64,000 nt of DNA from Gnetum montanum (Eukaryota > Plantae > Gnetophyta). Location: positions 595,496 to 659,495 of the forward strand of contig MNCI01002560.1 in NCBI GenBank assembly GCA_015680685.1. Reading direction: 5' to 3'. The translations under genes were made by a program, and so were the position numbers. How positions within the stretch are numbered: the first letter of the stretch is position 1; every line of letters begins with the position of its first letter. Shown piece after piece: positions 5,001-54,738 of the stretch. The notes below the pieces were generated by a model that saw only the letters and a program-made list of their open reading frames with translations, was not told where the DNA came from and ran no database searches.

Positions 5001-5444
5001 TTAGGATTCAAAAGTTCCTAAAAGTGGCATTGATTGTTGCTTTCATAGCCTATGATTTGCTATTTTTGTGTTGACTTGGTTCTAGCAAGTTTCTTGGGTG
5101 TTGACTTGGTTCTAGCTAGAAACTACAACATTTTTCATATTTATGCTGAGACTAATAAGTGTAGTGTTTTTGACATTTAATGCTAAAATTGGTAGCATTT
5201 TTGATAATATGAACTCCATTACTTTGGTTTTATATAATTCACATTGGTTTTGAAATTTTCTTTCATTAACTACACTTTAAATATTAACAACACTTAGGGA
5301 TCTTGACAAAAAAAGATTACAATATGAATTTTTTGAAGGAACATTAAGGCATTTGTTTTGTTATCAAATCTAATCAAATTACAATTAAAATTTGGCCACA
5401 CAGCTTCCCTATTTACAACTAAATTTTCTTTAAAGTGTTTCAAA
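2022..5444 (-). mobile_element. Ogre/Tat-like element: 5' LTR (~4501-5444) plus long 5' leader
   Basis: Reverse complement aligns with 49314-50520/55200-55700 and 61268-62185. A PBS-like TGGTGATCT follows ...TTCCACA at ~4501. It interrupts an Athila LTR at ~5445. Confidence 0.6.
3214..3687. mobile_element. ~474-bp insertion flanked by 11-bp direct repeat CCATAACATAA
   Basis: Repeat at 3203-3213 and 3688-3698. The insert is absent from the paralogous site at ~17165-17180. Short T-run at the left end. Confidence 0.65.
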
Positions 5445-7273
5445 TATCTTCTTACTTGGATTACAGGTAGCTTTATCATGTATGATTTAGTCAATAATGA
5501 GACACATAATTATTGATGTTGTGTGGTTATAACTAAGAGATATAAAAATATGAAAACATATTATTTAAGTAATTTAAGTAATAACAAGAAAATAAATTCT
5601 AAATTATTATAATAGTAATAGGTATCCATTTCTAGCTTACTATACACATCCTAAAAGTACATATTCATTACTAAGATTACCAAGTGTTATGCTACTATGT
5701 AAACGAAGTACTAATACTCCTAGGATTATGAAGAAAATATGTGTTTATGCTCAAAATCTGGCATGCTCATTCCACCAATTGATTAATATGCATAAAAATG
5801 TAAATATTAACTAAATACATAGACAGTAAATTCCATTGATAGAAAATCTATTCTAAGTCAAATTGCTACAATGAATATGAATCAATCTCAATCTTATTAT
5901 CATTCATGGACTTTTTCTACGTACAATGATACTTAAAATAAGACATCATATAATTAAATAAAATCCATGCTACTAGCACTCACTAAATGTTTATAAAGAT
6001 TAGGAAAGAAAACTTTAATAGTTTGGCTACACTACTAATGAAATGGTGTCAAATATGCAGTAGGTGTTTGCATACTTATAGGAAAATAAATATCCTATGT
6101 TGATGCATATGCATTAATTCATTTTGTTGCATCAACAAGGCTATGCATTAATTCATTTTGTTGCATTAATTCTTTTGATTATTTTCTTCACTTTCTAAAT
6201 GATTAAGTAAATAAATATTTAAGATTTAAATTAATTAAATAATTAGATTCTAAATTAGATAACAGCCTAATGCAGAGTATTTGTTCCCACTCTCTATACA
6301 TAACGTGAATGTATATTAATGTTGTTGGGTTACCAAGTATATACTATTGGGTATACCAATTATCCTCTAATAGGATTACCAAGTGTTAATATATTTTTCT
6401 CAATGTTGTCATACTCATACTACTTATGAATGATAATATTAATTTCTTAATAACAAGAAAGTAACTTGCCTGTAATGTAAATTATTGAAAAGTAGGTTTA
6501 AGTTGCTCCAAGTGCTACAATGGATACAAGACATCTAGATTTTCTTTATTATTATGCAAATATGTCTAGGTACATATGCACTTGAAAAAAATGTAGTACA
6601 ATGACCTGAATCCATGTTGTGGGCACTCAAAAGAAAAATATTCTAACTTATATGGCATGAAACTACAAGAGTTTGGATAAGGAAATGACCATAAGGTACC
6701 ATAAATGAGAGGATGTGTGCATATATATAGGTAATACTTGGATCAACATTGACATACCTATGTAAATGCATCCTAGGATACATAGATAAGGTTTTGTTGA
6801 CATAGCTTGTCTTATTAATGTTTTTGCATACCCTCACAATTGACTAAAGACTCATCCATGAATAAATAAAAAGAAGATTGAGCTTTGTATGGAATTTGGA
6901 AAAGTATGAAATTTTATTAGCTAACCAACTAACTCATTTACTCTGACTAACTCTTAAGTACCATGATATAAAGGTTACAAAAATTGATGTAATTTATAAC
7001 CAAAATTAATAGGATATTATTAAATGGATAGAGCCATGATAAAGTCTTCTCATAGTAAATCTAGAGATNTGATGTAGCTAAGTTTTGGTAAAGCAATGTA
7101 GTAGCTATGATATAGTAGATGTAATGTAGAATCTACAATGTAATAGAAAATTAAAATGTGTCAGCAAGAATGCATTGATGTAGATGCAATGTAGCATATA
7201 CAACATAGCATCTATAATATAGCATATGAAATATCACAAATGATTAATATAATTAATAAAATGATGCCTCATT
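5445..7273 (-). mobile_element. Old Athila-like 3' LTR remnant (interrupted by a probably mis-assembled block at 6169-7068)
   Basis: Aligns with the LTR at 46947-47921. Ends ATGATGCCTCATTA followed by a PPT-side sequence. The paralog is 18967-19853. Confidence 0.65.
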
Positions 7274-8342
7274 ATACTACCACAACTTACTAAAAACATT
7301 TTCTCAAGGTATGTCCATTACAAATATTATAAGATGACCATGGCTAGATTGGCTACCATTATAAAACTTGAATGTCACATTAAAAAATTTTATTTTAGTG
7401 AATAAATTACAAAATGATAAAAAGAATGGATAGACATCAAAGTTTACAAAATTACAAAAGTCCTTAAAATTATTTTGATGATGAATCTTCAAGTTATTGC
7501 TAGTAGTTGTAGTTTTGTAACCTCAATTGTTATGTTGGCTCTTCTCTTCTTATGCAAAAATTTATGAAGGATGAACTAAAATTTATTTTCATTAACAAAT
7601 ACTTTTCTAGGCTGCAAACATGTGATTTTTATTCTTTAATTCTTGTATCTACTATTTGTCCATAGGCATGTCCTCCTCTTGGCCTCTTTTCCTTTCCTTG
7701 TAAAAGATGTTAAACATTAAGCATTTCTTTTGGCATCATCTGTAATCACCAAAGGATAAATATTGGTTTTGGTAATTTTTAGTTAGTAATTAATACTTTT
7801 AGAATCCCTTTCTAGCTTAAAAGTTTTAAAAAATAACATTTAGGAAAAATTTGATTATGAGATCATGTCCCAAGACTTTAAGATAATTAAAATCATTAAG
7901 TTTTTAAAGTTATTTTAATTATTTTTACTATTAGTTACCATATTGTTAAAAAATGGAGTGTTAGGAAAAATTTTAAAAATCATATCCTTAGCCCCCATCA
8001 CAAAATATCTCAACTCTATAAGCTCACAAGTTTTAAAATAACTAAAATAAAAGGTCTTTTTCACAAGATATTCCAAATGCACCAAAATATTGAAAATCAA
8101 GAAGTTTTGAAATTGCTAAAAAACATTGAACTTAGAGGAACTTAAATATAAAAACATTAAAAAATAATTGAAATTGATGAAAAATAATATTTAAATCATG
8201 CATAAATTTAGATAATATGCCCATGATATCCTTGAAGATGTGAGGTTGATTCAAAGTCATGATCAACAAAAGTTATGTAAGTGGGTCCTTCCCAAAGTCA
8301 GCTCCTATACTAATGTCCTTGTATAACTACTTTATAGAAGTC

Positions 8343-9222
8343 TAATGAATAGCAATAATTCCCTACATCCAACTATATGAATTAGTAGCATGTATGTGAT
8401 ATCAAGTTAAATTCCATGAACTTTATTTACCTAAGTGGCCTATATTCCTAGATAGTCAATTATGTAGTTGCTAATTGTTGTCTTTTCAATTCACTCTTGT
8501 GTTAATCTACGTGTATGGTTAATACTGATTGAGGTATAAGATATTTATTTTTATTCTTTTGATTATTTTCTTCACTTTCTAAATGATTAAGTAAATAAAT
8601 ATTTAAGATTTAAATTAATTAAATAATTAGATTCTAAATTAGATAACAGCCTAATGCAGAGTATTTGTTCCCACTCTCTATACATAACGTGAATGTATAT
8701 TAATGTTGTTGGGTTACCAAGTATATACTATTGGGTATACCAATTATCCTCTAATAGGATTACCAAGTGTTAATATATTTTTCTCAATGTTGTCATACTC
8801 ATACTACTTATGAATGATAATATTAATTTCTTAATAACAAGAAAGTAACTTGCCTGTAATGTAAATTATTGAAAAGTAGGTTTAAGTTGCTCCAAGTGCT
8901 ACAATGGATACAAGACATCTAGATTTTCTTTATTATTATGCAAATATGTCTAGGTACATATGCACTTGAAAAAAATGTAGTACAATGACCTGAATCCATG
9001 TTGTGGGCACTCAAAAGAAAAATATTCTAACTTATATGGCATGAAACTACAAGAGTTTGGATAAGGAAATGACCATAAGGTACCATAAATGAGAGGATGT
9101 GTGCATATATATAGGTAATACTTGGATCAACATTGACATACCTATGTAAATGCATCCTAGGATACATAGATAAGGTTTTGTTGACATAGCTTGTCTTATT
9201 AATGTTTTTGCATACCCTCACA
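8343..9222 (-). mobile_element. Old Athila-like LTR (paralog at ~20938-21817)
   Basis: TAATGAATAGC...TTCCCTACATCCAAC start, GGATTACCAAG sub-repeats and ...CCCTCA end, all shared with the other Athila LTRs. No TSD seen. Confidence 0.55.
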
Positions 9223-9449
9223 ATTGACTAAAGACTCATCCATGAATAAATAAAAAGAAGATTGAGCTTTGTATGGAATTTGGAAAAGTATGAAATTTTA
9301 TTAGCTAACCAACTAACTCATTTACTCTGACTAACTCTTAAGTACCATGATATAAAGGTTACAAAAATTGATGTAATTTATAACCAAAATTAATAGGATA
9401 TTATTAAATGGATAGAGCCATGATAAAGTCTTCTCATAGTAAATCTAGA

Positions 9450-10260
9450 GATGAAGGCTTCTATGGCCCTCATGGTTCTTCATCATGTCTTGATGCTATT
9501 TGAGGTTGAGGCTATTGTACTACTACCACTACCACTACTGAAAATTTAAAGGCATCTAGGAGTGCTTTTACTTTCTTATCCTTTCTGCATGGGTCATATA
9601 TGCTATAGGGTACTTTGCCTAGATTAGCTAGTGTAGAGATGTTCCATGGGCATGATAATGAAGGAAACATATTTTGCATGTTGACGACTAGGCTGCAATG
9701 TTTTATGTACAACATCAAATTTCTTAATAAGGATCTACAACTCCATGTAGTCATTCATTTTCATTACTAGCTTTTTAGCAATAATTCCTTGATTTTTGAA
9801 TCTAGTTTTGAGAACATCAAGCTCTATGTTAGTTATCTCCAACTTTTATTTTGTATCTTTGTAAAGATTGAAATCTACCTCATAGAGATGGTGGGAGCTA
9901 GAAAACTTCTTCTCCATTTTTCTTGTTGGACTTCTTATTATTAGCATTTCTTGGTTTCCATAGTAGAGGTTGGCAAGCTCCATGTACTTAGTCATCTCTT
10001 CAATCTATAGATCCATATAGATTTCTTCTTAATTATATGTATTTAGTCCATCAAATATGGACTATCGCACATCATCTCTTTGCTATATTTTCTAGATAGC
10101 CTCATTTACCTTCATCTTAATCAATTTAATCTCATTTTCATTGACCTCTTTCAGTAGTTTGACTTGGTTCCTATAGTGATTTTACACCTTTTCAGATATC
10201 AAGACCTCATTTTTCAAGCATTGGCTACTATAGCTAGTCATTGTGCAACTATTTGTGTTA
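9450..10260 (-). pseudogene. Decayed coiled-coil C-terminal part of the Athila-like extra ORF
   Basis: Minus-strand DL*IEEMTKYMELANLYY matches DLQIQDLTEYMELANFRY in ORF 52071-52508. Confidence 0.65.
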
Positions 10261-15432: not shown

Positions 15433-18400
15433 GGAGACCTACTTAAATTTTACTATAAATAAAATTATAATATTTTTGTTAATAATAGTGAATTCTAGTT
15501 CTTATTTCCTCCATCTAAGTGATTTCCTATATTTTATAACCATTGGATCCTTAGGATCATATATGTAGATAACTTCTTGGTTGAAGGCCATGTGTATTAT
15601 GTCATGTGGAAAAACAGTGGAATGACAACAAGGCACAAAAAGTGTTAGATGCAATGACTATCAAGTATGGTAGAGGCTTTTATTATTTTAGTTTAAGTAA
15701 TTTTTTAATTTTTTGGCTTCTTAATGTTTTAGGTAGGTTGTAAATTTTGTAGCATATGAAACTTAAAGCTTATGGAAGTAGCTTGTTGAAGCTTCATAGT
15801 GTACAAAAGTTGCAACTTATGAAACTGCAACTATAATGGTAAAAAATAGAAAAACATTTTTAGAAAAAATTTCTAGTGTATCTAGTGAAGTTTATAAAAA
15901 GTGTAAATAAGTTGCAGTATACATGAAGATAACTAAGAAAATTTGTAGATTTGCAAGTGCAAAAGTCAACACAAATTACAACTATTAAGAACTTTTAGAG
16001 TTACAAAGTATGAAACAAAAGCATCACTATGAATTGCACTATAAATACACCTTATGATAATAATTTTTTGTTTCATCAATTGCACCAAGAAGAAAAGGGG
16101 AAAATAGATGGAAAATTTAGATATGGGTTTTGATGAATAATTTATGTGGAGGTCCTCCTAGCATCAAAAAATTATAGTGCTTGAAAAATTTAGTGCTAAA
16201 TATCGAAAAATTTAGATCAGAAATAGCTTTAACTTTGGATCCATAGGCCTCACAAAAGGATCTAAGCATCCTTGACAGTCTTATTGATCACCCAAGAACA
16301 TATAAATCCATTACTGATGTATATGAAAATTTAGTGCATATGAAAATGTAGTCGATGCTATAGATTAGAGTGTAGAAAAATGCAAAGAAAAAATGTGGAA
16401 AATGAATGAAACTACAAACTTGTATTAAAATCATAGGAAATTTTTAGAAATAACAATTTAAAAAATACAAGTTACAAGTTTCAAATGCCCAAAAACTTTG
16501 AACAAGTGTATGGAATTTGATGTAGACATCAAGATGTATTCTACAATTAGACCTACCTTAGAATGACCCAAATGATTTACTTGGAATTTATTTGCCACCA
16601 ATTTTTCTATAACTTTGATCTATGCTAGGTAATAATGGTTGTTAACCTTTAGAAATATGCATTTCTTTGAAAGTCTCAAGTTCAACTGAATTCAAATTTT
16701 GCCAAAAGTCCTCAAAATGAAATAAATCTTTGTTTAAATAAGTGTTGGATCCATGATTTGTTGCCATTAATTCTACCATGATTGCTAACAAATTTTTGGT
16801 ACATTTTGTTGCACCTGGAACACCTCCATGTAGTGTATAAACAATTTTATCTAAATTTTTGCTTTTTGTACATTGCTTTGTATGCTACCCAACATAGAAA
16901 ATTTCCATACCCAGTATATGGAATTAAAACCAAAAACTTTTACATTCTCTCTATAGGTTTTCCAATGCACAAAACTATAATGCTCATTGTACAAGGTTAA
17001 GATATCAAATTTTGTAGTGTTTGAAGCACTTTTAACCCCCTCAAGCTAGAATACATGGATTTTACAACTTCCACAAGCTAGGATGTATGAGATTTATAGT
17101 GTATGGACTACACATCTAATATTTTAAATTAAAAAATTACCTTAAATTCCACTAATATTGGTTCATAATGTAAGATTTTGGGAAAAATATGGCAAATGTT
17201 GTTGCCTTTATTATTTCACCAAATTACAAAGAATTTTGGCTATGGGGTATAACATGATTTTTCTTTGGGATGTATAACATGTGTTTGATTGCATCCGAGC
17301 CACCTAAGAGACTACTTACACTCCATTATAGATGGGGTTTTCAGGTTATAAATACAAGCAGAATCCTAGTTGAAGGCCATATCAATAATGTTTTGAGGTA
17401 GGATGGTCAGTACAAAAGTAATAAATAATGTGAAATTGAGGGATCGAGCTGATGTGACAAAGGTTTTAACAATGTAAATGAAGATTATATGCACCATGAA
17501 CATTGCAACAACATGAATGAGTTGTAGTGTAAAGGTAATAGTAGGGTAAATGAAACATGTAGTCAAAATGTAAAATTCAGAAAATAGAAAAAATAAAATA
17601 AATTGAAAATTAAAAGGATAATTTTTAGTAAATGTAGAGAGATCAACTAGTTACAACATTTTTAACATAGCATTTTTTAGGAAATTTTGGGAATTTAGAG
17701 GAAATAGAAGCAAAGTTTGAGGAATTAGAAAACTCAAGGTTAGTGTATTTGTAGGATTTTCATTACATGAGAGAAGTTTATAGCTAAGAGAAAAATTTTG
17801 GTGAAGGAAAACAAGGAGCAAAAATTTTGGTGCTAAAACGCACCCAAAAACAACTCCTTCATGTTGAATACACGGGCATAGACGAGTTGAAATAAGCAAA
17901 CAATGGTTATTCTTGTGTTTAGGAAAGAAAGTAGGTAGAGGCCCTTCTTTAGCACCAGAAAACTATAATGATAGAAAAATTCAATATTAGATACCAAAGA
18001 TCTCCATGAAGAATAGTTGTAGCTCAAGATCCATGGGTTTCAAAAGGATCTAAGGCATCTTAGGAAGTCTTGTGAATCACCTAAGGACTTAATAGGTCTA
18101 TTACTTGAAAGAAAATTATAGATAGTGTGTGAATAATAGATTTAACATTGGATTCATAAGTAAATTAAGAGAGAATATAACTGATACAAGAAAATGTGAC
18201 TTAAATACAAAAAAAATTGTATTAATCTTATGAAAAATACAAGATGAGAAAGAATAGATCTGAATGCATGAATAACTTTCAAAGTATAGAACTATGAATG
18301 TTCCAAGAATACCCTTGAAAGTGTTGTTGGAAAAATCATGTATAGGTAGGGAGGGTATGTTCTTTAGTTTACTTTACCACATCTAGCTTGGCTGATCTAT

Positions 18401-21400
18401 GGACAACAATAGGTTCTTAGTGCTCTCAATGATTAACACTCGAATGAAATTACTCCAAGCTCTAGGATCTATCTCTAGTTCAAAAGTCTCAAGTTTGGAA
18501 TAGTTTTGATTGTATTAAAGTCCCCAAAAGTGCGATAAATTCTTGGTTTTATAGCCTATGATTTGTTGTTTGTCTAATGACTTGGTTCTAGCAAGTTTCA
18601 TGGATGTTTGCACAATGTTTTTGACCATTCATATTAGCCAAAAACTACAACATTTTTCATATTTATGCTAAGACTAATAAGTGCAATGTTTTTAGCATTT
18701 CATGCTAAAATTGGAAGCATTTTTGATAAGATGAACTCCATTACTTTGGTTTGATATAATCCACAATATTTTTGACACTTTGTGTCATTAATTAACCTAT
18801 ACATATTAAGAATGCCTTGGAATCTTGATAAAAAAGGATTACAAGATGAATTTTTTGAACGAACATTGAAGCATTTGTTTTGCTTTTGAATCTAATAAAA
18901 ATTACAATTAAAATTTGGCCACAAGGCTTCCCTATTTAGAACTAAATTCTCTTTGAGGTGTTCTAACTACATTCTTACTTGGATTAGAGGTAGATTTATC
19001 ATGTATGATTTAGTGAAAAATGAGACATATGATTGTTGATGTTAGGTAGTTATAACTAAGAGATATAAAAATATGAAAACTAATTACTTAAATAATTTAA
19101 CTAATAACAAGAAAATAAAATCTAAATTATCATAACAATAATAGGTATTCATTTTTAGCTTAATGTACACATTTTAAACTGACATATCCATTACTAGGAT
19201 TACCATGTGTTATGCTATTGTGTGAACCAAGTAATACTACTACTAAGATTACAAAAAAATATGTGTTTATGCTCAAAATTGGGCATGCTCATTCCACCAA
19301 TTGATTAATATGCATAAAAATGTAAATATTAACTAAATACATGGAAAGTAAATTCCACTCATAAAAAATCTATTCTAAGTCAAATTGTTACAATGAATAT
19401 GATTCAACCTCAATCTTATTATCTTTCATGAAATGTGTCTAGGTAAAATGATACTTAAATAAGACATCATATATTTAAATCAAATCCATGCTACTAGCAC
19501 TTACTGAATATTTACAAAGATTATGAAAGAAAACTTTCAGTGTTTGGCTACACTACTAACGAAATGGTGCCAAATATGTGGTAGGTGTTTACATATATAT
19601 AGGAAAATAAATAGACTATGTTGATGCACATCTATTAATGCATTTAGCTACATCAACAAGGCTATGTTTATGTAGCTAAGTTATAGTAAAGCAATGTAGT
19701 AGCTACGATATAGTAGATGTGATGTAGAATCTACTAGTAGAAAATTAAAATGTGTCAGTAGGAATGCATTGATGTAGATGCAATGTAGCATCTACAAATA
19801 TAGCATATGAATATCACAAATTATTTATATAATTAATAAAATGATGCCTCATCATACTTCCACAACTTACTAAAAACATTTTCCTAAGTTATGTATCAAT
19901 GGACAAAGTTCCATTACAAATATTATAAGATGACCAAAGCTAGATTGTCTACCATTATAAAACTTGAGTGTCACATTAAAAAAATTTATTTTAGTAAATA
20001 TACTAAAATACTATAAAAATAATTGATAGAAATAAATGTTTACAAAATTAAAGAAGTCCTTAGAAATCTTTTGATGATGAATCTTCAGGTTATTGCTAGA
20101 AGTGGTAGTTTTTCTAACCTCAATTGTTATGTTGGCTCTTCTCTTTTTATGAAAAAATTTATGAAGGATGAACTAAAATTTAATTTTATTAACCCATGAT
20201 TTTCTAGGCTTCAAACATGAGATTTTTATTCTTTAATTCCTGTATCTACTATTTTTCCATAGGCATGTCCTCCTCTAGGCCTCTTTTCCTTGCAAAAGAT
20301 GTTAAGCATTAAGCATTCCTTTTGGCATCATCTATAATCACCAAAGGATCAATATTGGTTTTGGTAATTTTTACTTAGTAATTAATACTTTTAGAATCCA
20401 TTTCTAGCTTAAAATTTTAAAAAATTTAACATTTAGGCAAAAGTTGATTATGAGATCATGTCCCAAGAGTTTAAGATAATTAAAATCATTAAGTTTTTAA
20501 AATTATTTGAATTATTTTTACTATTAGTTACCATATTATTAAAAAATGGGGTGTTAGAAAAAATTTCAAAAATCATATCCTTATCCCCCATGAAAAATGC
20601 ACTCAACTCTAGAATCTCACAAGTTTTAAAACAACTAAAATAATAGGCCTAGTTCATAAGATATTGCAAATGCACTAGAATATTGAAAATCATGAAGTTT
20701 TAAAATTGCTAAAAACTATTGAACTCAAAGGAACTTTAATATAAAAAAATTGAAAATTAATTGAAATTGATAAAAAATAGTTTCAAAATCATGCATAAAT
20801 TTAGATAATATTCCCATGATATCCTTGAATATTTTAGGTTGATTCAAAGTCATGATCAACAAAAGTTATGCAAGTGGGTCTTTCCCAAAGCAGGCTTCTA
20901 CAATAATGCCCGTGTATAACTACTTTCATAGATGTCTAATAAATAGCAAGTATTCCCTACACCCAACTATATGAATTAGTATCATGTATAGGCAATCTAG
21001 TTGAATTCCATGAACTTTATTTACATAAGTGATGGATATTCCTAGACATTGAATTATGTAGTTGCTAGTTGTTGTCTTTCCAATTCACTCTTATGTTAAT
21101 CAATGTGTATGGTTAAGAGTGGTTGAGGTAGAAGATATTATTTTTATTCTTTTTATTATTTTCTTCACTTTCTAAATGATTGAGTAAATAAATTTTTAAT
21201 ATTTTAATTAATTAATTAATTAACTACTGAATTAGAGAACAAGCTTAATATAGAGTATTTATTCCCACTCTATGTACATTCCTTGAATGTATATTAATGT
21301 TGTTGGGTTACCAATCATATACTATTGGGTATACCAAGTATCTACTAGTAGGATTACCAAGCATTAATATATTTTACTCAATGTTTTCATAATCATATTG

Positions 21401-22600
21401 CTTATGAATGATAATATTAATTTCTTAATAACAAGAAAGTAACTTGACTGTAATGTAAATTATTGAAAAATAGGTTTATGTTGCTCCAAGTGCTACAATG
21501 GATAGAATACATCTTGATTTTAGTTATGCTTATTCACATATGTCTAGGTACATATGCACTTAAAAAATGTAGTATAATGACTTGAATCTATGTTGTGGGC
21601 ACATAAAGGGCAAATATTCTAACTTCTATGGCATGAAACTACAAGAGCTTGGATAAGGAAATGACCATAAGGTACCATAAATGAGAGGGATGTGTGCATG
21701 TATATAGGTAATACTTGCATCAGAATTGATGTACCTATATAAATGCATCCTAGGATATGTTGATTAGGTTGTGTTGACATAGCTTGTCTTTTTAATGTTT
21801 CCTCATACCCTCATGATTGACTAAAGACTCATCCATGAATAAACAAAAACAAGAGTGAGCTTCGTATGGAATTTGGAAAAGTATGAAATTTTATTAACTA
21901 ACTAACTAACTAATCAATTGACTCTGACTAACTCTAACTACAATACAATATAGATTACAAAAATTGATGCAATTTAAAACAAAAATTAGTAGGATACTTT
22001 TGAATGGATAGAGGTGCGAGGAAGTCTTCTCATAGCACTTGGAGTTAAAGGCTTCTATGGCCCTCATGGTTCTTCATCATGTCTTGGTGGTAGTTAGGTT
22101 GAGGCTACTATACTACTGCCATCATTGCTACTAAAAATGTAAAGCCATCTACGAGTGCCTTTATTTTCTTATCCTTTGTTCATGGATCGTATATGCTATA
22201 GGGTACTTTGCCTAGATTAGCTAGTGTAGATATGTTTCATGGACATGATAATGAAAGAAGCATCTCCTACATGTTGACAAACTAGGCTGCAATGTTTTAT
22301 GTACAACATCAAATGTCTTGATAAGGATCTACAACTCCATGTAGTCATTCATTCTCGTTACTAGCTTTTCAATAAAAATTCTTTGATTTGTGAACCTTAT
22401 TTTGATAACATCAAGCTCCATGTCAATTATCTCCAACTTTTATTTCTTATATTTGTAAAGCCTAAACTCTACCTCATATAGAAGGTAGGAGCGAGCAACT
22501 TGCTTCTCCAATTTGCTTCTTGGCCTTCATATTGTTAGCATTACTAGGTTTGCATAGCAAAGTTGGTGAGCTTCATGTACTTAGTCATCTCTTAAATATG
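15433..22600. repeat. Copy 2 of the segmental duplication
   Basis: Colinear with 2022-10005. Has an extra ~570 bp (16200-16770) and lacks the 3214-3687 insert. Confidence 0.85.
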
Positions 22601-40669: not shown

Positions 40670-41029
40670 TCACTCTTGGATTTGTCTCCTCAAGGATGAC
40701 ACTCTCGCATAGGTTTGATATCTTTTATTGAAGAGGTTTACCATTGTAGGCCAACAGTGAATTGAATTCAGTTTTAAAGACTTGTACAAAACTTTTGCTT
40801 GGCCAACGAGTGTCCTAGGGAAGAACTTAAGCCTTTTCCACCCATTTTCAATGTTGTTCCATACATAGGCATTATAGAAAGCTTGTAAATGATGTTGTAG
40901 ATCTAAATCATAGCCTCCTAAGAACTTAGAAAAGTTTTTTAAATCAAGCCTAGGTAGATGGCTTTTCTTGTGATGCCTACAAGATATCTGAATGGCCTTT
41001 ATTATATGCATTAAGCTCTTAGTGGCCAA
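40670..41029 (-). pseudogene. Retrotransposon gag domain fragment
   Basis: KFLGGYDLDLQHHLQAF...RLKFFPRTLVGQAKVLYKSLKLNSIHCWPTMVNLFNKRY is a typical Retrotrans_gag signature. Confidence 0.85.
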
Positions 41030-41803
41030 TGGGGGTTCATCATCACTAAATAAGTTGTGAGTTCATGACTTGGAACAATTCTATCTATGTTCATATTGGT
41101 GTTCTTGCTTTTCCCCATGGGTTCGATTTTTATTTCTATGCTAACACCTTAAGGAATAGTTATCCATGTCACAACCCGACATTAAAAGAGTAGAGGAAGA
41201 GATAGAACTCAAAGATTTTTCATGACTTTTGTAAGTCTCCCAATCATCCCCTCATGTACTTATGCTACCCATTGAGAAGGTCCTACACCTTATATGCCCC
41301 CTCATTCTAGGGGATGTCCCATATTTACTAGAGGTGTTTGTATTGAATGAAAAAATTTCTTAAGTATCATTTGGATGTCTATGAACATATGAAACTCTTG
41401 CATGAGATCGAGTACTCCAAACATATTCTTCATCATAAATTTTGTTGGTTCTCTAATGAATTACCTTGCTTGAAGTTGCATTATCATTGTCTTATGAAAG
41501 AGACATTGTCATGAATTTTCTATGAATTACTTGAATTTAATTTTTTTTTGAAAGATATATCATTAATACCCTATTATAATGATCTTGTATGATATAACTA
41601 ATCTAGATAACTAGCACAATCCCTAGTAATGGTGCTAATGGTGAGCAACAAGGTACCCCCTATGCTCAACCATATGAATACAAGCATGTACATGTGATTT
41701 GGTCAAACTCTATAGATGGACTAGTTGTGGTATCTAAATGGTTATACATTAATTGTAGTTTACTATCTTTTCACTTAGACTAGTATTTTCTTTATCACGT
41801 ATG

Positions 41804-44415
41804 TGTTGGCACATTGGGCCATTTTATGGAACAGTAAGGAATTATATTATTTACTTTAAAATCTTTGGTGAAGAATGTGCTTAAAATTATTAGTAATGCA
41901 AAAAAAATTCATTGGAAAGGTCTCAAATTAAAAATCCCTGTTAACCATTGTTAAGCTCAGTTTTATATTTGGCCCTACCTTGCAAAAATCCAGAAAGCTT
42001 GATTCCCAGACTCTGCCAGAAAGCTTTAGTTTCCAAAATAGTCAGGGTGGCAATAGAAGTTCTCTCCTCATAGAAATCCTTGTTGAAGGGATCGTACTCA
42101 ATCTGCAAATGATCCAGAGCAAGAATAGGCTCAATCTTCTTCTTATCATTGGGCACAACTAGATTATCATCGGAATTGTACTCGGGATGGCCTTAGGCGG
42201 CGTCGACGGCCTTGGCAGTAGTATAAACCTGCTAGTCAAAATCATATCCAGCATTCAAGGCATCCATTTCTTCCCACCATGAACGCATCCAACAGATTCA
42301 CTTCTTTGTCATCGTCATTGTCATGGCCATCATTGTTGTTCTTGTCATCGTCGTCTTCATTAATATTGATGCTATTGAAACCCTCGGTGTACTCAATGTC
42401 GTCCAGGACGTAACCTTCGAAGTGTTCGCTGGGGGGTCTGGTTGGCAACGGCATGTACAGACGCCACTGCGATTTCATGGATTTGAACCCTGGAATCATA
42501 GAATCGCCCAAGAAACCCGGCCTATTTATGCTGAAACCCTCATATTAGAACCTATGCTTTGACATTCTGACCCTCATTGTTTCTCAAAGAATGTGCAAAA
42601 GTGACCACCTTTATCTTGTGTGAAGTTCTGGCTGTAGTCGCACTACAAGAAAAATCCATGGGATGGGAACAAAGGCGGCAAAGAAAATAGCTCCAATGAC
42701 ATGTGCATTTCCAGCTCACCACCATGACTTCCAATACTTTGTTACAGAGATTTTCTAGCTGCTACCTTGCCAAATAGGCCTAGGCTTTCCCAAGGAAAGC
42801 ATTTCAATTTTTTCTTTTTAGGTGGTAATCACCAATGTCATTCACTCCTGGAACATGCAATCTGAAATAGCAGCCATGCCTGATGCCGATGAATTCGATA
42901 TCGCATACCAATCCACTGAACGCAACAACAAAGATACAAAGGCACACTAAGACAGGTGTCAAGAGATATTTTGGGCCAATACCGGTAAATCAAAGTTGCA
43001 GTTCATCAAAAATAAAATTTTAAATGGTCTGGTGATTAATTTAGCAATGTCACAATGTCACATACGCTAATAGTATGAAGCCCTAGTTATAGACTTACCT
43101 TTTAATTTAATTATTCCAAGGCTTCAAAACATTATTTTTTCAAACATTATTATATAAGTTACAACCCATAAAATATTTGTAATATTAATGTTAAAATATT
43201 TGTAATATTNNNNNNNNNNNNNNNNNNNNNNNNNNNNNNNNNNNNNNNNNNNNNNNNNNNNNNNNNNNNNNNNNNNNNNNNNNNNNNNNNNNNNNNNNNN
43301 NNNNNNNNNNNNNNNNNNNNNNNNNNNNNNNNNNNNNNNNNNNNNNNNNNNNNNNNNNNNNNNNNNNNNNNNNNNNNNNNNNNNNNNNNNNNNNNNNNNN
43401 NNNNNNNNNNNNNNNNNNNNNNNNNNNNNNNNNNNNNNNNNNNNNNNNNNNNNNNNNNNNNNNNNNNNNNNNNNNNNNNNNNNNNNNNNNNNNNNNNNNN
43501 NNNNNNNNNNNNNNNNNNNNNNNNNNNNNNNNNNNNNNNNNNNNNNNNNNNNNNNNNNNNNNNNNNNNNNNNNNNNNNNNNNNNNNNNNNNNNNNNNNNN
43601 NNNNNNNNNNNNNNNNNNNNNNNNNNNNNNNNNNNNNNNNNNNNNNNNNNNNNNNNNNNNNNNNNNNNNNNNNNNNNNNNNNNNNNNNNNNNNNNNNNNN
43701 NNNNNNNNNNNNNNNNNNNNNNNNNNNNNNNNNNNNNNNNNNNNNNNNNNNNNNNNNNNNNNNNNNNNNNNNNNNNNNNNNNNNNNNNNNNNNNNNNNNN
43801 NNNNNNNNNNNNNNNNNNNNNNNNNNNNNNNNNNNNNNNNNNNNNNNNNNNNNNNNNNNNNNNNNNNNNNNNNNNNNNNNNNNNNNNNNNNNNNNNNNNN
43901 NNNNNNNNNNNNNNNNNNNNNNNNAAGTGTTTACTTATGTCATTTTACCTTGTTTGAATATTTGAGGTCCATGCAAATCTACTTTCTTTTCTATCTATTT
44001 CCATCGAATCTTGCTCTATTTCTAGTTTTCTTGTGGAACTATTTCCTTCTCTGGGGAAAATTAGAAGTAGATTCGTAGAGTTGTGCTCAAATGTTTTTGC
44101 AAAATTTTATTTGTTACAAGTAGGTATTATAAGGACTGTGTAGACTAGGCAATTGAACAAAATAGGAACTTTCAACAACTCACAGTACTTGGAAAAGTTG
44201 GTTAGATCTCTTTAAGATAAGTCATTTGTAGTTTACACACAATGCAATCATTTCATTTTACACAACCTCATGCTGCAACAGTACATACAGATACTCACAT
44301 TAACTACTGAGTCTATTTGGAGGTATCTGGGCCTTGGTGTTGCCAGAGACCAGCAAGCACTTAAATCCTGTTCTAGGACACTCGTTGGTAGTCGCATCCC
44401 AAACGATCATCAATA
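41804..44415. mobile_element. LTR-like insert (TGTTG...CAATA) with 5-bp TSD GTATG, carrying a host-gene fragment
   Basis: GTATG at 41799-41803 and 44416-44420. Removing the insert restores the host LTR sequence seen at 1321-1370. Contains a ~715-N gap. Confidence 0.8.
41986..42565 (-). pseudogene. RH24: 5' fragment of DEAD-box ATP-dependent RNA helicase 24 (RH24, DDX42/SF3b125 orthologue)
   Basis: MSKHRF*YEGFSINRP...QWRLYMP...LDDIEY...EVNLLDAFM / DALNAGYDFD*QVYTTAKAVDAA*GHPEYNSDDNLVVPNDKKKIEPILALDHLQIEYDPFNKDFYEE...SLGIKLSGF matches, from recall, the plant RH24 N-terminus. Three stops and one frameshifting deletion. Ends before the helicase Q motif. Confidence 0.9.
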
Positions 44416-45105
44416 GTATGGTTTAGTGTAGAGTGAGGTTTATGATGTGATCCCTACTACTATGCTACTCCTAATGACAACAAGAGATAACTTACTTAAG
44501 CTTAATGGGAAATAGGAAATAAGATCTAAGCTAGCATAAATGCAATGAACACCTATTCCTAATCATTCGTATACGTCTTGGACTTCATGTACTACTTCTA
44601 GAATTACCAAGCATACATCACTTGAAGCACTACATGATACTTTACTAGGTTACTATGTAGTTACACTTAAATGTTCGTGATTAAGGCGTACTCATTCTGT
44701 GCTGATAATAGGAATAGTAAATGACCATAAAATAAATATTAACTAAGAAAATAGTAATAAATAATCAACAATTAAAATAATTAAAAGCTATGTGAATGCT
44801 GAAATGATGGAGTAATCTCGATCTTTATTGTTGATCATGTGCATGTCCAAGTATGTCACACTTGAACAATGGTGTCATACAATTACAAACATCACACTAT
44901 GGGCATACACCAAGAATAACTAAAAGATAAACTACCAAAAGAAATGAACTTCTAACTTCCTAATGATCTAACTCCTATCTTACTATGTGCCTAACTGTTG
45001 TATTTATAGGCTAACATAAGAATCACAATATCATGTATATGATATTGTATCCAAGCCGTAATATCGTGTACCCAATATTGGGGCCTAGTAAATTGTCACT
45101 CATCC

Positions 45106-46946: not shown

Positions 46947-47921
46947 TGAAAAGTGAGAATTTTTTCCTATGTTCAACTAAATAAATTACAAATGCATACA
47001 TGTGATCTATTTAAATTCCATGGATAGAACTACTTTAGTATCTAGATCATTACATATTTATTGTAGGTCACTATCTTCTCACTTGAACTAGTGGTAGATT
47101 TATCATGTATGGTTTAGTCCAAACTCATGCATATGACTATTGGTGTTGTGTGGATATTACTAAGCTATATAAAAATATGAAAATAAATTATTTAGCTAAT
47201 CTAAGTAATAACAAGAAGATAAATCTTAAATTATCCTAAGGATGATGAGTGTCCATTTCAAACGTGCCATCCATGTCTTGAACTCACATACCCACTATTA
47301 GGATTATCAAGTATTATGCTACTAGGTGAACCAAATAATAACACTATTAGGAGTACCAAGCAAATACATGCTTACACTCAATGCTAGTCATGCTCATTCC
47401 ACCAATTGATTAATATGCATGAAAATGTAAATATTAACTAAGTACATATAAAGTAAATTACATTAATAGAAAATATATTCTAAGTCAACATATTACAATG
47501 AATATGTATCAATCTTAATCATATTATCATTCATGAAATGTGTTTAGGTACAATGCCACTAAAATAAAACATTGAATAATTAATTCATATTCATATTCCA
47601 AGTACTCACTAACTCTTTCCTAAGAATATGAAACAAAACTAAATGAATTTAGCTGTAGTAATAACCAAATAGTGTTGTATACATTATGGATGTTCATATA
47701 TTTATAGGAACATAAAGACACTATGTCGATGCATATGCATTAATACATTTGGTTGCATCAACAAGTCATTGTTAATGTAGCTAAATTATAGTATATGTGA
47801 TGTATCATCTATGATATAGTAGCCAACTAAGATGTATTGATGGGGATGCATCAAAAAGATGTCACATATCATCTATGATATTGCAACTGATTGATATATC
47901 TAACAAAATGATGCTTCATCA
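46947..47921 (-). mobile_element. Athila-like 5' LTR (old)
   Basis: TGA...TGATGCTTCATCA termini, adjacent PBS, aligns with 18967-19853. Confidence 0.8.
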
Positions 47922-50900: not shown

Positions 50901-51759
50901 NNNNNNNNNNNNNNNNNNNNNNNNNNNNNNNNNNNNNNNNNNNNNNNNNNNNNNNNNNNNNNNNNNNNNNNNNNNNNNNNNNNNNNNNNNNNNNNNNNNN
51001 NNNNNNNNNNATGCTCATAGTCAAGTCGTACTTACACTGTGCTATGAAAGCAATAAATAACATNNNNNNNNNNNNNNNNNNNNNNNNNNNNNNNNNNNNN
51101 NNNNNNNNNNNNNNNNNNNNNNNNNNNNNNNNNNNNNNNNNNNNNNNNNNNNNNNNNNNNNNNNNNNNNNNNNNNNNNNNNNNNNNNNNNNNNNNNNNNN
51201 NNNNNNNNNNNNNNNNNNNNNNNNNNNNNNNNNNNNNNNNNNNNNNNNNNNNNNNNNGTAGTCAAGTCGTACTTACACTGTGCTATGAAAGCAATAAATA
51301 ACATGAAATAAATAACAATAAATAAACTAAGTGAATGCTGCAATGATGAAGTAATCTCGATCTTTATTGCCGGTCATGTGCGTGTCCAAGTACGGCACAC
51401 TCGAATAAAGACACCGTACAATCACATTCACCACACTGCGGGCAGACACGGGAAAATTCTAACTCTGGAGGGATCAAACTGCCAGAGCTTCGCTACCTGA
51501 AACTGGGATCCCCAAACAAGGGAGAGCCGCCTCTTATTTATAGACATGGCGACAGACTGCGATATCGCGTACACGATATCGCGGGGGATGCGATATCACA
51601 TTGGACGCGATATCGCATACGCGATATCGCGGCTGATGCAGACTGCGTCTCATCATACCCCCACGACTGAATAAAAACTTGTCCTCGAGTTACAAGGAGA
51701 ACAAGCTTCAGTGATTACACAGTGGATAGGTATGGGATTATTAACTAGAAAAAGAAATG

Positions 51760-54738
51760 GACTAATGCCGCAGTGTGGGAAGACACAACACAGAGAAAAG
51801 CTGCTACGACTGCAAAAATGGGGAACTCATGTAGTTCCTGGTGGCGGTGGCTCCTCCATGGGTGCTTTCCCTTTGTCACGTGCTTCAAGTTTTGAAGATT
51901 GATGATGTTGAAGAATAGCCTGGAGCTTCTCCTTCTTGGTCTGAGGGTCTTGTGCTGTCCATGCTGATGCTCCAATGTTTGATGGTGTCGGCACTTCCCA
52001 TGGATAGGGTAGTTGCGGGAACATCTGATTAGCTTTGACATACCACGCCGCAAACACCCGTCGTTCCTCTTCAAAGGCTCTGGCTTTGTCTTTGTACTCG
52101 TGAAGTTCTATTAGCCATTGAGCCAAGTCGGTTCACATCTTTCTGCCCTTGGTAGCTCTCTTTTACCACCGCGAGTTTAGAATTTGCAACATCTAATTTT
52201 TCAGCCAACTTCTTTCGCTCTGCAAATTTTGCTTCATATTTGATGTAGGCGGAAGCTACCTGCTGCTCGAGCTCTGACCTTGGGCGTCCTGCTGTTAACA
52301 TGGCCAGGTTGGCATATCGAAAGTTGGCCAACTCCATGTATTCAGTTAAGTCTTGGATCTGCAGGTCCCGGTTCTTAATCTCCACCTCGTGGGCATAGGC
52401 ATAAGTGTCCAATATGGCCCCCCAATCAGTGTGCTGGGCACTGATGTTGTTGATTTGGGCTTTTGCCATATGGATCTCCTTTTCCAGGATCTGTTTGTAC
52501 ATCCCCACCTAGTCACGGAAGTGCTCCTTCAGCTTCTCATGTCGTTTAGCCTCATTCTACCACGCACTAATCTCGATGGCTGATTTCTGTCGAATAGTGC
52601 GCACCTCCTCCATTGAGAGGGTTCAATTTTCTCTGGCTAAATTGCTTACGTCTTGGTTGACTTGAATGAATTGTTCTCGCAGCCGATGAAAGTGCTCATC
52701 GAGAACATTCTTTTACTTCTCCACATAAGTCAACCGAAGGTTATCGGCAACCAACTGCTTATTTTCTTCTTGTAAGGCCTTGAGTGCCTTAAGATGTGCA
52801 TGATTTTGCGCCTTTGCTGCGGAGGCATCCCAAGTGGCCGTCTCCTTTTCTTCTGCCACCTTCTTATTTTCTGCAATTAATTTGGTTAATTGCTTGGTTT
52901 TAAAATTGTCTAACTGGTCTACGGGAACCAATCACAAGGGATCCTGCTATGCTGCTTGTAAGACGATGAGCTGCTCTTGTAATTTCTACACTTCAGCCTC
53001 ANNNNNNNNNNNNNNNNNNNNNNNNNNNNNNNNNNNNNNNNNNNNNNNNNNNNNNNNNNNNNNNNNNNNNNNNNNNNNNNNNNNNNNNNNNNNNNNNNNN
53101 NNNNNNNNNNNNNNNNNNNNNNNNNNNNNNNNNNNNNNNNNNNNNNNNNNNNNNNNNNNNNNNNNNNNNNNNNNNNNNNNNNNNNNNNNNNNNNNNNNNN
53201 NNNNNNNNNNNNNNNNNNNNNNNNNNNNNNNNNNNNNNNNNNNNNNNNNNNNNNNNNNNNNNNNNNNNNNNNNNNNNNNNNNNNNNNNNNNNNNNNNNNN
53301 NNNNNNNNNNNNNNNNNNNNNNNNNNNNNNNNNNNNNNNNNNNNNNNNNNNNNNNNNNNNNNNNNNNNNNNNNNNNNNNNNNNNNNNNNNNNNNNNNNNN
53401 NNNNNNNNNNNNNNNNNNNNNNNNNNNNNNNNNNNNNNNNNNNNNNNNNNNNNNNNNNNNNNNNNNNNNNNNNNNNNNNNNNNNNNNNNNNNNNNNNNNN
53501 NNNNNNNNNNNNNNNNNNNNNNNNNNNNNNNNNNNNNNNNNNNNNNNNNNNNNNNNNNNNNNNNNNNNNNNNNNNNNNNNNNNNNNNNNNNNNNNNNNNN
53601 NNNNNNNNNNNNNNNNNNNNNNNNNNNNNNNNNNNNNNNCCTGGCATCATCGATGACACGGAAGAGACTGGTGTCATCATGACTTCCCCAACTGACCGTC
53701 TCAGCAATGGCCCTTAAATGGCTCATTGATGGTCTATAGTCTTGCAACGGCGGCTGATCCTAGCCTGTACCGGGTTCTGCTTCCTGTTGTTGGCTAGGGC
53801 CTATGGCTGGAGGTTGACTGGGTCCTGCAAGCTAAGTTGCAGGGGTTTTAGTCACTTTTTCTTCGTTTTCCTCATTAGGCCCCAACTCTTCGCCAGTACT
53901 CTTTCTTGGAGCTAGCGCCTTTAATAATTCGGCATAAGAAGCATTTTGGGCCTTTCGGAGGACATCATTTGTATATCCCCGAATACCTGCCTGACGGCAC
54001 AGTTTTCTGATAAGGCAGGGAAAAGGGATTGCCATTTTTCCTATCTTCTGTTCTTCGAATCGCCTTAGGATCTCCGTCAAATATAGATGAGGAAGGTTAG
54101 CATTAACCTTTCCCATCAACACTGCACATCCTCTTGCCGCATACGTTGATATTCTCTTTAAGCCTTTTATAGGGAAGAGGTGATAGGTCCCGATTTTAAA
54201 ATAGACTCACTCTTCCATGGTCAGCTCACCGAAAGCCTTATCTCTNNNNNNNNNNNNNNNNNNNNNNNNNNNNNNNNNNNNNNNNNNNNNNNNNNNNNNN
54301 NNNNNNNNNNNNNNNNNNNNNNNNNNNNNNNNNNNNNNNNNNNNNNNNNNNNNNNNNNNNNNNNNNNNNNNNNNNNNNNNNNNNNNNNNNNNNNNNNNNN
54401 NNNNNNNNNNNNNNNNNNNNNNNNNNNNNNNNNNNNNNNNNNNNNNNNNNNNNNNNNNNNNNNNNNNNNNNNNNNNNNNNNNNNNNNNNNNNNNNNNNNN
54501 NNNNNNNNNNNNNNNNNNNNNNNNNNNNNNNNNNNNNNNNNNNNNNNNNNNNNNNNNNNNNNNNNNNNNNNNNNNNNNNNNNNCCGGACCGTCTGGTAGG
54601 AGGTTCGTTTTGATGGATACTGAATGAATGCACCTCCTGTTCATTATGTTGTCTAGCAGGGACTTGTCTTTGACCTTTCCTAGGTTGCTTTGCTCCACCT
54701 TGGGTCAGAATCTTCTGCTAGGTGCGTTTCAGGGCCAT
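51760..54738 (-). pseudogene. Extra (env-position) ORF: putative plant transposon protein-like domain plus long coiled coil
   Basis: ATG at 54738 (MALKRT*QK). IPFPCLIRKLCRQAGI motif at 53832-54122. Heptad-rich ORFs at 52071-52931. Few stops or frameshifts, two N gaps. Confidence 0.75.

Follow-up and report, generated by a model that had tools for sequence, protein, structure and literature searches.

A Solo Long Terminal Repeat-Like Insertion in Gnetum montanum Carries a Decayed RH24/DDX42 Fragment Apparently Copied From Spliced mRNA

We analyzed a stretch of 64,000 nucleotides from the genome assembly of Gnetum montanum (GCA_015680685.1, contig MNCI01002560.1, positions 595,496 to 659,495 of the forward strand), referred to here as the window; all positions are those of the window unless a different contig is named. 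At 41804-44415 an insertion splits an older repeat, is bracketed by a 5-bp target-site duplication (TSD) and holds, on the minus strand, a degraded 5′ fragment of the gene for the DEAD-box helicase RH24/DDX42. New here is that this RH24 cargo crosses a conserved exon 1/exon 2 junction, from which intron 1 is precisely missing, and that it keeps the mRNA 5′ end. The unit that carries it has no visible repeat pair and resembles a solo long terminal repeat (LTR).

Insertion Site and Host Repeat

The direct repeat GTATG brackets the insert at 41799-41803 on the left and 44416-44420 on the right. At the left junction (41799-41808) GTATG is followed immediately by TGTTG, and at the right junction (44411-44420) CAATA is followed immediately by GTATG. 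When the window was compared with itself, the left flank (41376-41803) was found to be collinear with 909-1342 at 78% identity. The right flank matched the continuation of the same paralogous copy, with 82% identity between 44416-44480 and 1338-1401 and a match that ran on to 1809 (82% and 68% identity for 44416-44910 against 1338-1809). The left-flank and right-flank alignments to the paralog at 909-1809 overlap by exactly five bases, 1338-1342. A third copy of the repeat, more diverged, was located around 46966-47200. In a three-way alignment, both empty-site paralogs read ...TCATGTATGGTTTAGT... and contain one GTATG each (1338-1342 and 47107-47111), and the filled site minus one duplicate aligned to both of them free of gaps.

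The TSD is exactly 5 bp, because the bases adjoining GTATG differ on both sides, and the duplication is genuine, because the flanks are collinear with two paralogs that each hold a single GTATG. The segment 41804-44415 is one insertion with an authentic integrase-type 5-bp duplication. An earlier reading of this DNA, made from the letters without database searches (here called the sequence-only reading), had claimed a perfect GTATG duplication and a clean split of the host repeat, and both are upheld by the two empty-site paralogs.

The same alignments bear on a possible scaffolding misjoin, in which the two arms of the unit would come from different loci and no single 2.6-kb unit would exist. 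An assembly gap lies between the arms, and the arms share no sequence, as might be expected from a misjoin; however, the outer flanks are two halves of one host repeat that meet at the same 5 bases as the two empty-site paralogs. Since a misjoin would not recreate that flank geometry, we regard it as very improbable. No reading frame or homology was found to cross the gap (43210-43924), and continuity of the arms rests on this geometry, in which each arm directly adjoins a TSD copy and, beyond it, a half of the interrupted repeat.

The left half of the host repeat is non-coding and lies approximately 350-800 bp upstream of a gag-like open reading frame (ORF) on the minus strand (40670-41029). 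This ORF gave a weak Retrotrans_gag match (E 1.7e-4) that falls under the Pfam cut-off, and a homologue search with it returned nothing. The host repeat appears to be retrotransposon-derived and to represent a non-coding part of a decayed LTR retrotransposon, for which the label Athila, given in the sequence-only reading, is only putative. As a separate observation, 29 nt at the right end of the inserted unit (44360-44388) are 83% identical to a stretch of the gag-like ORF in sense orientation (40803-40831, E 0.009). The two have the peptide RTLVG in common, probably by chance.

The RH24/DDX42 Fragment

The coding cargo was recognized from a 71-aa ORF on the minus strand (41941-42156). The matches of this ORF in a whole-library phmmer search were DDX42/RH24 proteins, and the named cluster members among them carry the annotation DEAD-box ATP-dependent RNA helicase 24. 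In tblastn searches of the window with RH24 orthologs, matches were confined to two adjacent minus-strand blocks, one covering residues 1-89 and the other residues 135-224 (Table 1), with a weaker collinear extension that reaches approximately 41945. The fragment thus comprises about 200 codons. Its downstream edge is 182 bp away from the left terminus of the unit, and the ATG (42563-42565) is about 760 bp away. The sequence-only reading had described about 190 codons of RH24 with the start codon, which is borne out by tblastn, and had placed this 5′ fragment about 180 bp from the left end; that distance holds for the edge of the fragment but not for the start codon.

The reading frame is broken in several ways. 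Three in-frame stops were observed (42545-42547, 42232-42234 and 42193-42195), the two blocks lie in different frames as the result of a frameshift, and both tblastn and the nucleotide alignment indicate that about 45 codons (residues 90-134) are deleted between them. When ranked against approximately 120 angiosperm RH24 orthologs, the fragment was uniformly distant (45-48% amino acid identity overall, or about 46%) and gave no host-lineage signal. Its nucleotide identity to the RH24 loci that we fetched from metagenome contigs is 58-63% over exon 1 and 69-74% over the best 213 bp, compared with approximately 75-77% among the fetched loci themselves across orders. By its divergence and lesions the RH24 copy is old, degraded and dead. 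One stretch of 25 nt is identical to an Opuntia-like RH24, and identity of this length to a distant RH24 would in principle allow cross-matching by 21-24-nt RNAs.

Candidates for further copies of the unit were considered and rejected. Short DDX42-like ORFs in the representative library turned out to be orthologs from diverse eukaryotes. A protein from Canavalia (P0001) was rejected as a family member, since true RH24s are just as close to the fragment and since it retains residues that are lost here. This hypothetical protein of Canavalia gladiata (221 aa) has an unrelated N-terminus fused to RH24 residues ~125-235 across the exon 1/2 junction, after which it diverges, and it may be a further case, from a legume, of an RH24 fragment that was truncated or captured.

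Intron 1 and the Origin of the Fragment

The exon structure of RH24 was surveyed by scanning Joint Genome Institute (JGI) metagenome contigs with an N-terminal piece of RH24, which recovered 25 plant loci. By best named match, these belong to Medicago-like, clover-like, three Phaseoleae-like, Populus-like and Opuntia-like lineages, together with one Ericales-like transcript. A phase-1 intron 1 splits the Gly codon after SIS in all six of the genomic RH24 lineages fetched, and the orthologous exon 2 runs from the split Gly codon to approximately residue 613. Three truncated ORFs on unrelated contigs (P0004, P0008 and P0013) leave RH24 after SISG with a G/GTA read-through, and their divergence at this point also implies an intron there.

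In the window, by contrast with these loci, the fragment crosses the exon 1/exon 2 junction ungapped in tblastn, with the aligned codon at 42046-42048. The part of the fragment belonging to each exon was compared on its own. The 34 residues past the junction aligned with the start of exon 2 of six orthologs in exact register (z 4.6-6.6), at scores that were reached by 0-3 of 1000 shuffles. Because the exon 2 part aligns in register directly after the junction, intron 1 is precisely absent, and its absence points to a spliced mRNA as the source of the RH24 cargo.

The boundaries of the fragment were also informative. Homology to RH24 breaks off within exon 2, at approximately codon 225-235, rather than where two exons meet. 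The 5′ end of the mRNA, with its ATG, is retained in the fragment and the 3′ end is absent; no poly(A) was found at either fragment boundary, and no other part of RH24 occurs in the window. We considered whether the fragment might end at a splice donor (...CAAG/GTAGGG), which would imply genomic capture, but this was ruled out by an exon 2 that is uninterrupted to approximately residue 613. A spliced, 5′-anchored fragment of this kind fits template switching by reverse transcriptase onto a spliced mRNA, and on the same sequence evidence neither DNA-level capture nor a retrocopy made by a long interspersed nuclear element (LINE) would fit.

These boundaries also speak to a later, private insertion of RH24, as a nested retrocopy or as repair filler, into this LTR copy alone. 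The window offers no second copy for comparison, and the RH24 block stands out in composition (40-52% GC) from the AT-rich arms, both of which are compatible with a private event. Yet no duplication, poly(A) or 3′ mRNA end surrounds the block, and LINE retrocopies keep the 3′ end and lose the 5′ end, the opposite of what is seen here. We therefore assign a private insertion only a small probability.

In the course of the survey, the Populus-like RH24 at first seemed to lack intron 1, which was wrong: tblastn had read through an intron of 112 nt. At this locus (L004, metagenome contig, 6592-6703) intron 1, of about 112 nt, is open in frame, so the gene looks intron-less. Short in-frame introns that are read through by tblastn call for caution in reports of intron loss.

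Structure of the Inserted Unit

The visible sequence of the unit consists of a left arm of 1,406 bp (41804-43209) and a right arm of 491 bp (43925-44415), on either side of the assembly gap (Table 1). The GC profile revealed an exon-like block of approximately 1 kb (42004-43003) at 40-52% GC between arms of 17-33% GC. Of this block, only about 620 bp are accounted for by RH24. The remaining stretch, 42566-43003, may be RH24 5′ untranslated region (UTR), with or without another captured piece. Pfam and protein-atlas look-ups with it found no family or look-alike, and it showed no similarity to the DNA upstream of the fetched RH24 loci. A by-eye likeness of the stretch upstream of the ATG to the C-terminus of an amino-acid transporter found no support and was dropped. 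Across the unit, a Pfam search with 20 stop-free pieces yielded nothing credible and two protein-atlas look-ups yielded nothing, and neither Rfam nor tRNA scans gave any hit in the window. The AT-rich stretch at the left end (41809-41944) had no recognizable homology: its comparison with RH24 exon 2 did not rise above shuffles, and it had no match elsewhere in the window.

Comparison of the left arm with the right arm recovered no direct or inverted repeat above chance (best local scores 25 and 24; shuffles averaged 23.4 and reached at most 38), and none was found between the terminal 300 bp of each arm. The sequence-only reading had noted that no second copy of the terminus is visible, and this was confirmed; paired short LTRs or terminal inverted repeats (TIRs) are not visible either.

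Table 1. Features of the inserted unit and of the repeat that it splits, in window coordinates.
Feature	Position	Strand	Evidence or remark
Left half, split host repeat	41376..41803	minus	78% identity to 909-1342
Left TSD copy GTATG	41799..41803		Single GTATG in empty-site paralogs
Inserted unit, solo-LTR-like	41804..44415		2,612 positions including estimated 715-N gap
Left terminus TGTTG	41804..41808		Sequence reading
AT-rich terminal stretch, 28-33% GC, candidate constant element end	41809..41944		GC profile
RH24/DDX42 second block, residues 135-224	41986..42264	minus	tblastn, 56-59% identity, E 1e-23 to 1e-27
Codon aligned with the Gly split by intron 1	42046..42048	minus	Intron absent in window fragment
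RH24/DDX42 first block, residues 1-89, with ATG	42272..42565	minus	tblastn, 35% identity, E 1e-7 to 3e-9
GC-rich (40-44%), exon-like stretch 5′ of the RH24 ATG	42566..43003		GC profile
Very AT-rich stretch, 17-30% GC, with 18-nt tandem duplicate at gap edge	43004..43209		GC profile
Assembly gap, 715 N, length estimated	43210..43924		N run
Right arm of unit, ends CAATA (44411-44415)	43925..44415		Without coding or repeat homology
Right TSD copy GTATG	44416..44420		Single GTATG in empty-site paralogs
Right half, split host repeat	44416..44910	minus	82% and 68% identity to 1338-1809

Element Class and Proposed Mechanism

A solo LTR is recognized by an integrase TSD of 4-6 bp and by 5′-TG...CA-3′ ends with short inverted termini. 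It should also have full-length relatives, in which two such LTRs enclose a primer-binding site (PBS), an interior and a polypurine tract (PPT), and multiple genomic copies that share its ends but differ in their duplications. The ends of the unit, TGTTG...CAATA, include the 5′ TG, and four of the five terminal bases are inverted-complementary (chance approximately 1.6%). Pack-type TIR elements make TSDs of 9-11, 3 or 8 bp, and Helitrons have 5′-TC...CTRR-3′ ends and a 3′ hairpin, insert between A and T and make no TSD. The inserted unit differs from Pack-MULE, Pack-CACTA and hAT-type elements in having no inverted repeat over the shuffle level and a TSD of 5 bp, and from Helitrons in its TGTTG...CAATA ends and its 5-bp TSD at a GTATG target.

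Both a complete two-LTR element, whether a terminal-repeat retrotransposon in miniature (TRIM) or a large retrotransposon derivative (LARD), and TIRs are ruled out, provided that the gap is about as long as stated. At that size a whole left LTR (less than ~1.3 kb) and the end of the right LTR would both show and match each other. With the complete element excluded if the gap is as long as stated, the simplest interpretation is a solo LTR, and it fits the 5-bp TSD, the TG-type ends, the lack of internal repeats, a length in the LTR range and the nesting in retrotransposon debris. We lean toward the view that the unit is a solo LTR and that the RH24 cargo forms part of the LTR itself. The sequence-only reading had proposed the same; the integrase-type TSD, the TG-type ends and the absence of paired repeats count in its favor, although the identification as an LTR stays a matter of interpretation.

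If the unit is a solo LTR, the following sequence of events could account for it. In a virus-like particle, reverse transcriptase would have switched from the element RNA to a co-packaged RH24 mRNA at approximately codon 230, run to the 5′ end of that mRNA and then switched back to the element. With the switch occurring in the future LTR region, plus-strand synthesis would copy the cargo into both LTRs, and the cargo would spread with the element. After integration, LTR-LTR recombination would delete the interior and leave one LTR between the duplicated GTATG, and later mutation would ruin the RH24 reading frame. Because template switching joins RNAs of the same sense, the sense strand of the LTR is predicted to be the minus strand of the window.

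Several observations weigh against this account. The 3′ terminus is TA rather than CA, one C>T change away. If the LTR sense is minus, only about 140-180 bp past the cargo are left to accommodate the R and U5 regions, a tight though possible fit, and the unit showed no clear TATA or poly(A) signals. It has no PBS, PPT or gag-pol of its own. No other copy of either arm was found in the window, even at a word size of 7 bases. Roughly a quarter of the unit is concealed by the gap, the real length of which may differ from 715, and approximately 430 bp of exon-like sequence (42566-43003) are unexplained. Finally, the presence of intron 1 in the parental gene is deduced from its conservation in other plants.

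The estimated gap length opens the way to a different explanation, in which the gap is far longer and hides the interior of a complete, perhaps non-autonomous, element. The left arm (41804-43209) would then be the 5′ part of one long LTR and the right arm (43925-44415) the 3′ part of the other, and RH24 would still lie inside an LTR. Arms with nothing in common are to be expected if the LTR exceeds 1.9 kb and each arm represents a separate portion of it. On the other hand, such an element needs LTRs of at least ~1.9 kb together with a several-fold underestimate of the gap, and the gap edge is AT-rich and of low complexity (17% GC, tandem 18-mer), the usual sign of a local assembly failure. We consider a hidden complete element quite unlikely.

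The scarcity of landmarks in the unit suggests another alternative, namely DNA that was mobile or inserted by integrase without being a conventional LTR. It could be an undescribed non-autonomous class or a one-off chimeric cDNA, made of pieces of host mRNA and short element ends and inserted by a retrotransposon integrase. The 5-bp TSD and the minimal TG...TA ends are the sole ties to an integrase, no LTR-specific feature was demonstrated, and there is no second copy within the window, all of which would agree with such an origin. But the unit, which spans 2.6 kb and has non-genic, AT-rich arms that measure ~140 bp and 490 bp or more, resembles element sequence and not host mRNA, and we judge this alternative to be unlikely, if worth bearing in mind. 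A solo LTR with internal cargo accordingly stays our preferred, though provisional, reading.

Other Repeats in the Window

Elsewhere the window contains further repeats. A repeat of approximately 8 kb is present in two copies (2064-9968 and 15475-22562) with 83-92% identity, about 12.6-13.5 kb apart, and a partial third copy was found at 47070-47822. No intact ORF of at least 150 aa was found in the window outside the N gaps, and the region was for this reason taken to be old repeat debris. Within the first copy of the 8-kb repeat, 6166-6465 and 8550-8849 are 100% identical, as are 6711-6937 and 9095-9321, at a spacing of exactly 2,384 bp and with a single N at 7069. Such identical stretches in otherwise old, diverged repeats stem either from tandem duplication in the very recent past or from an artefact of assembly that duplicated the sequence.

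A cluster of ORFs on the minus strand (51745-54122) is broken by five N gaps. One of its ORFs (53832-54122) matched Transposase_32, a "putative plant transposon protein" family, with an E value of 6.6e-6, below the cut-off, and lies next to a coiled-coil-like ORF (52071-52508).

Implications

This copy alone is old and dead, and its value would lie in a family, if one is confirmed. We tentatively suggest, as a possibility that we hold with less than even confidence, that the unit is a member of a genome-wide "Pack-LTR" family, which would repeatedly have acquired, through template switching, the 5′ parts of spliced mRNAs of the host within its LTR and whose RH24 sublineage would have been amplified to several copies. 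The term was not found in the literature searched. If such a family exists, it would be the retro-element counterpart of Pack-MULEs.

Cargo located in an LTR would be doubled at each transposition and placed beside an LTR promoter or terminator. It would also survive as solo LTRs, which would make for a more efficient scattering of gene starts, consisting of the ATG and N-terminal exons. Gene starts scattered in this way could provide material for exon shuffling, decoy transcripts and small-RNA production; the siRNA or antisense RNA against the helicase that the sequence-only reading had proposed stays a conjecture. The copy described here offers a mechanistic clue, since its spliced and 5′-anchored cargo points to template switching over read-through or DNA-level capture.

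Comparison With Known Systems

Gene capture of this kind is unusual but not unprecedented. Transduction of host genes by plant LTR retrotransposons is known, usually in sense orientation (PMC7264820; also PMC2774510, PMC3726574). The surveys of maize, rice and sorghum screened full-length elements (PMC2774510, PMC3726574, PMC7264820); the maize survey reported that none of its elements combined pieces of several genes (PMC2774510), and in the published examples consulted the transduced cargo is shown lying between the LTRs (PMC3726574, Figure 3). Like Bs1 of maize and other transducing LTR retrotransposons, the unit in G. montanum combines an intron-less, pseudogenised host fragment with an LTR-type element and a 5-bp TSD. 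Unlike the Bs1-type cases, there is no LTR pair here, and only 140-180 bp separate the cargo from the end of the solo-LTR-like unit, which would put the cargo inside the LTR, if the unit is one.

The unit also shares properties with other carriers of host sequence. As in Pack-MULE and Pack-CACTA (Pack-TYPE) elements and Helitrons, we see what would be a non-autonomous unit that carries, and might amplify, a host gene fragment. These elements differ in that their cargo is genomic DNA with introns, whereas here intron 1 is absent, TIRs are missing and the TSD is 5 bp. The RH24 fragment resembles a LINE processed pseudogene in being an intron-less and pseudogenised copy of a host mRNA. Such pseudogenes, however, keep the 3′ end and poly(A), are 5′-truncated and have a variable TSD of their own, while here the end with the ATG is kept and the 3′ end is gone.

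Foreign sequence within the LTR itself has precedents. Cassandra TRIMs contain 5S rRNA sequence within their LTRs. Template switching can bring foreign sequence into LTRs, as in the BARE-2 LTR with Wis-2 sequence and in long Veju TRIMs (PMC13317346). If the G. montanum unit is an LTR, it would be like BARE-2/Wis-2, Veju and Cassandra in having foreign sequence within the LTR, duplicated at each replication cycle, and the likeness to BARE-2/Wis-2 and Veju would extend to the proposed route, a template switch between co-packaged RNAs. The cargo sets it apart: in BARE-2, Veju and Cassandra it is retroelement sequence, unknown DNA or an RNA polymerase III gene, whereas here it would be the 5′ part of a spliced protein-coding mRNA.

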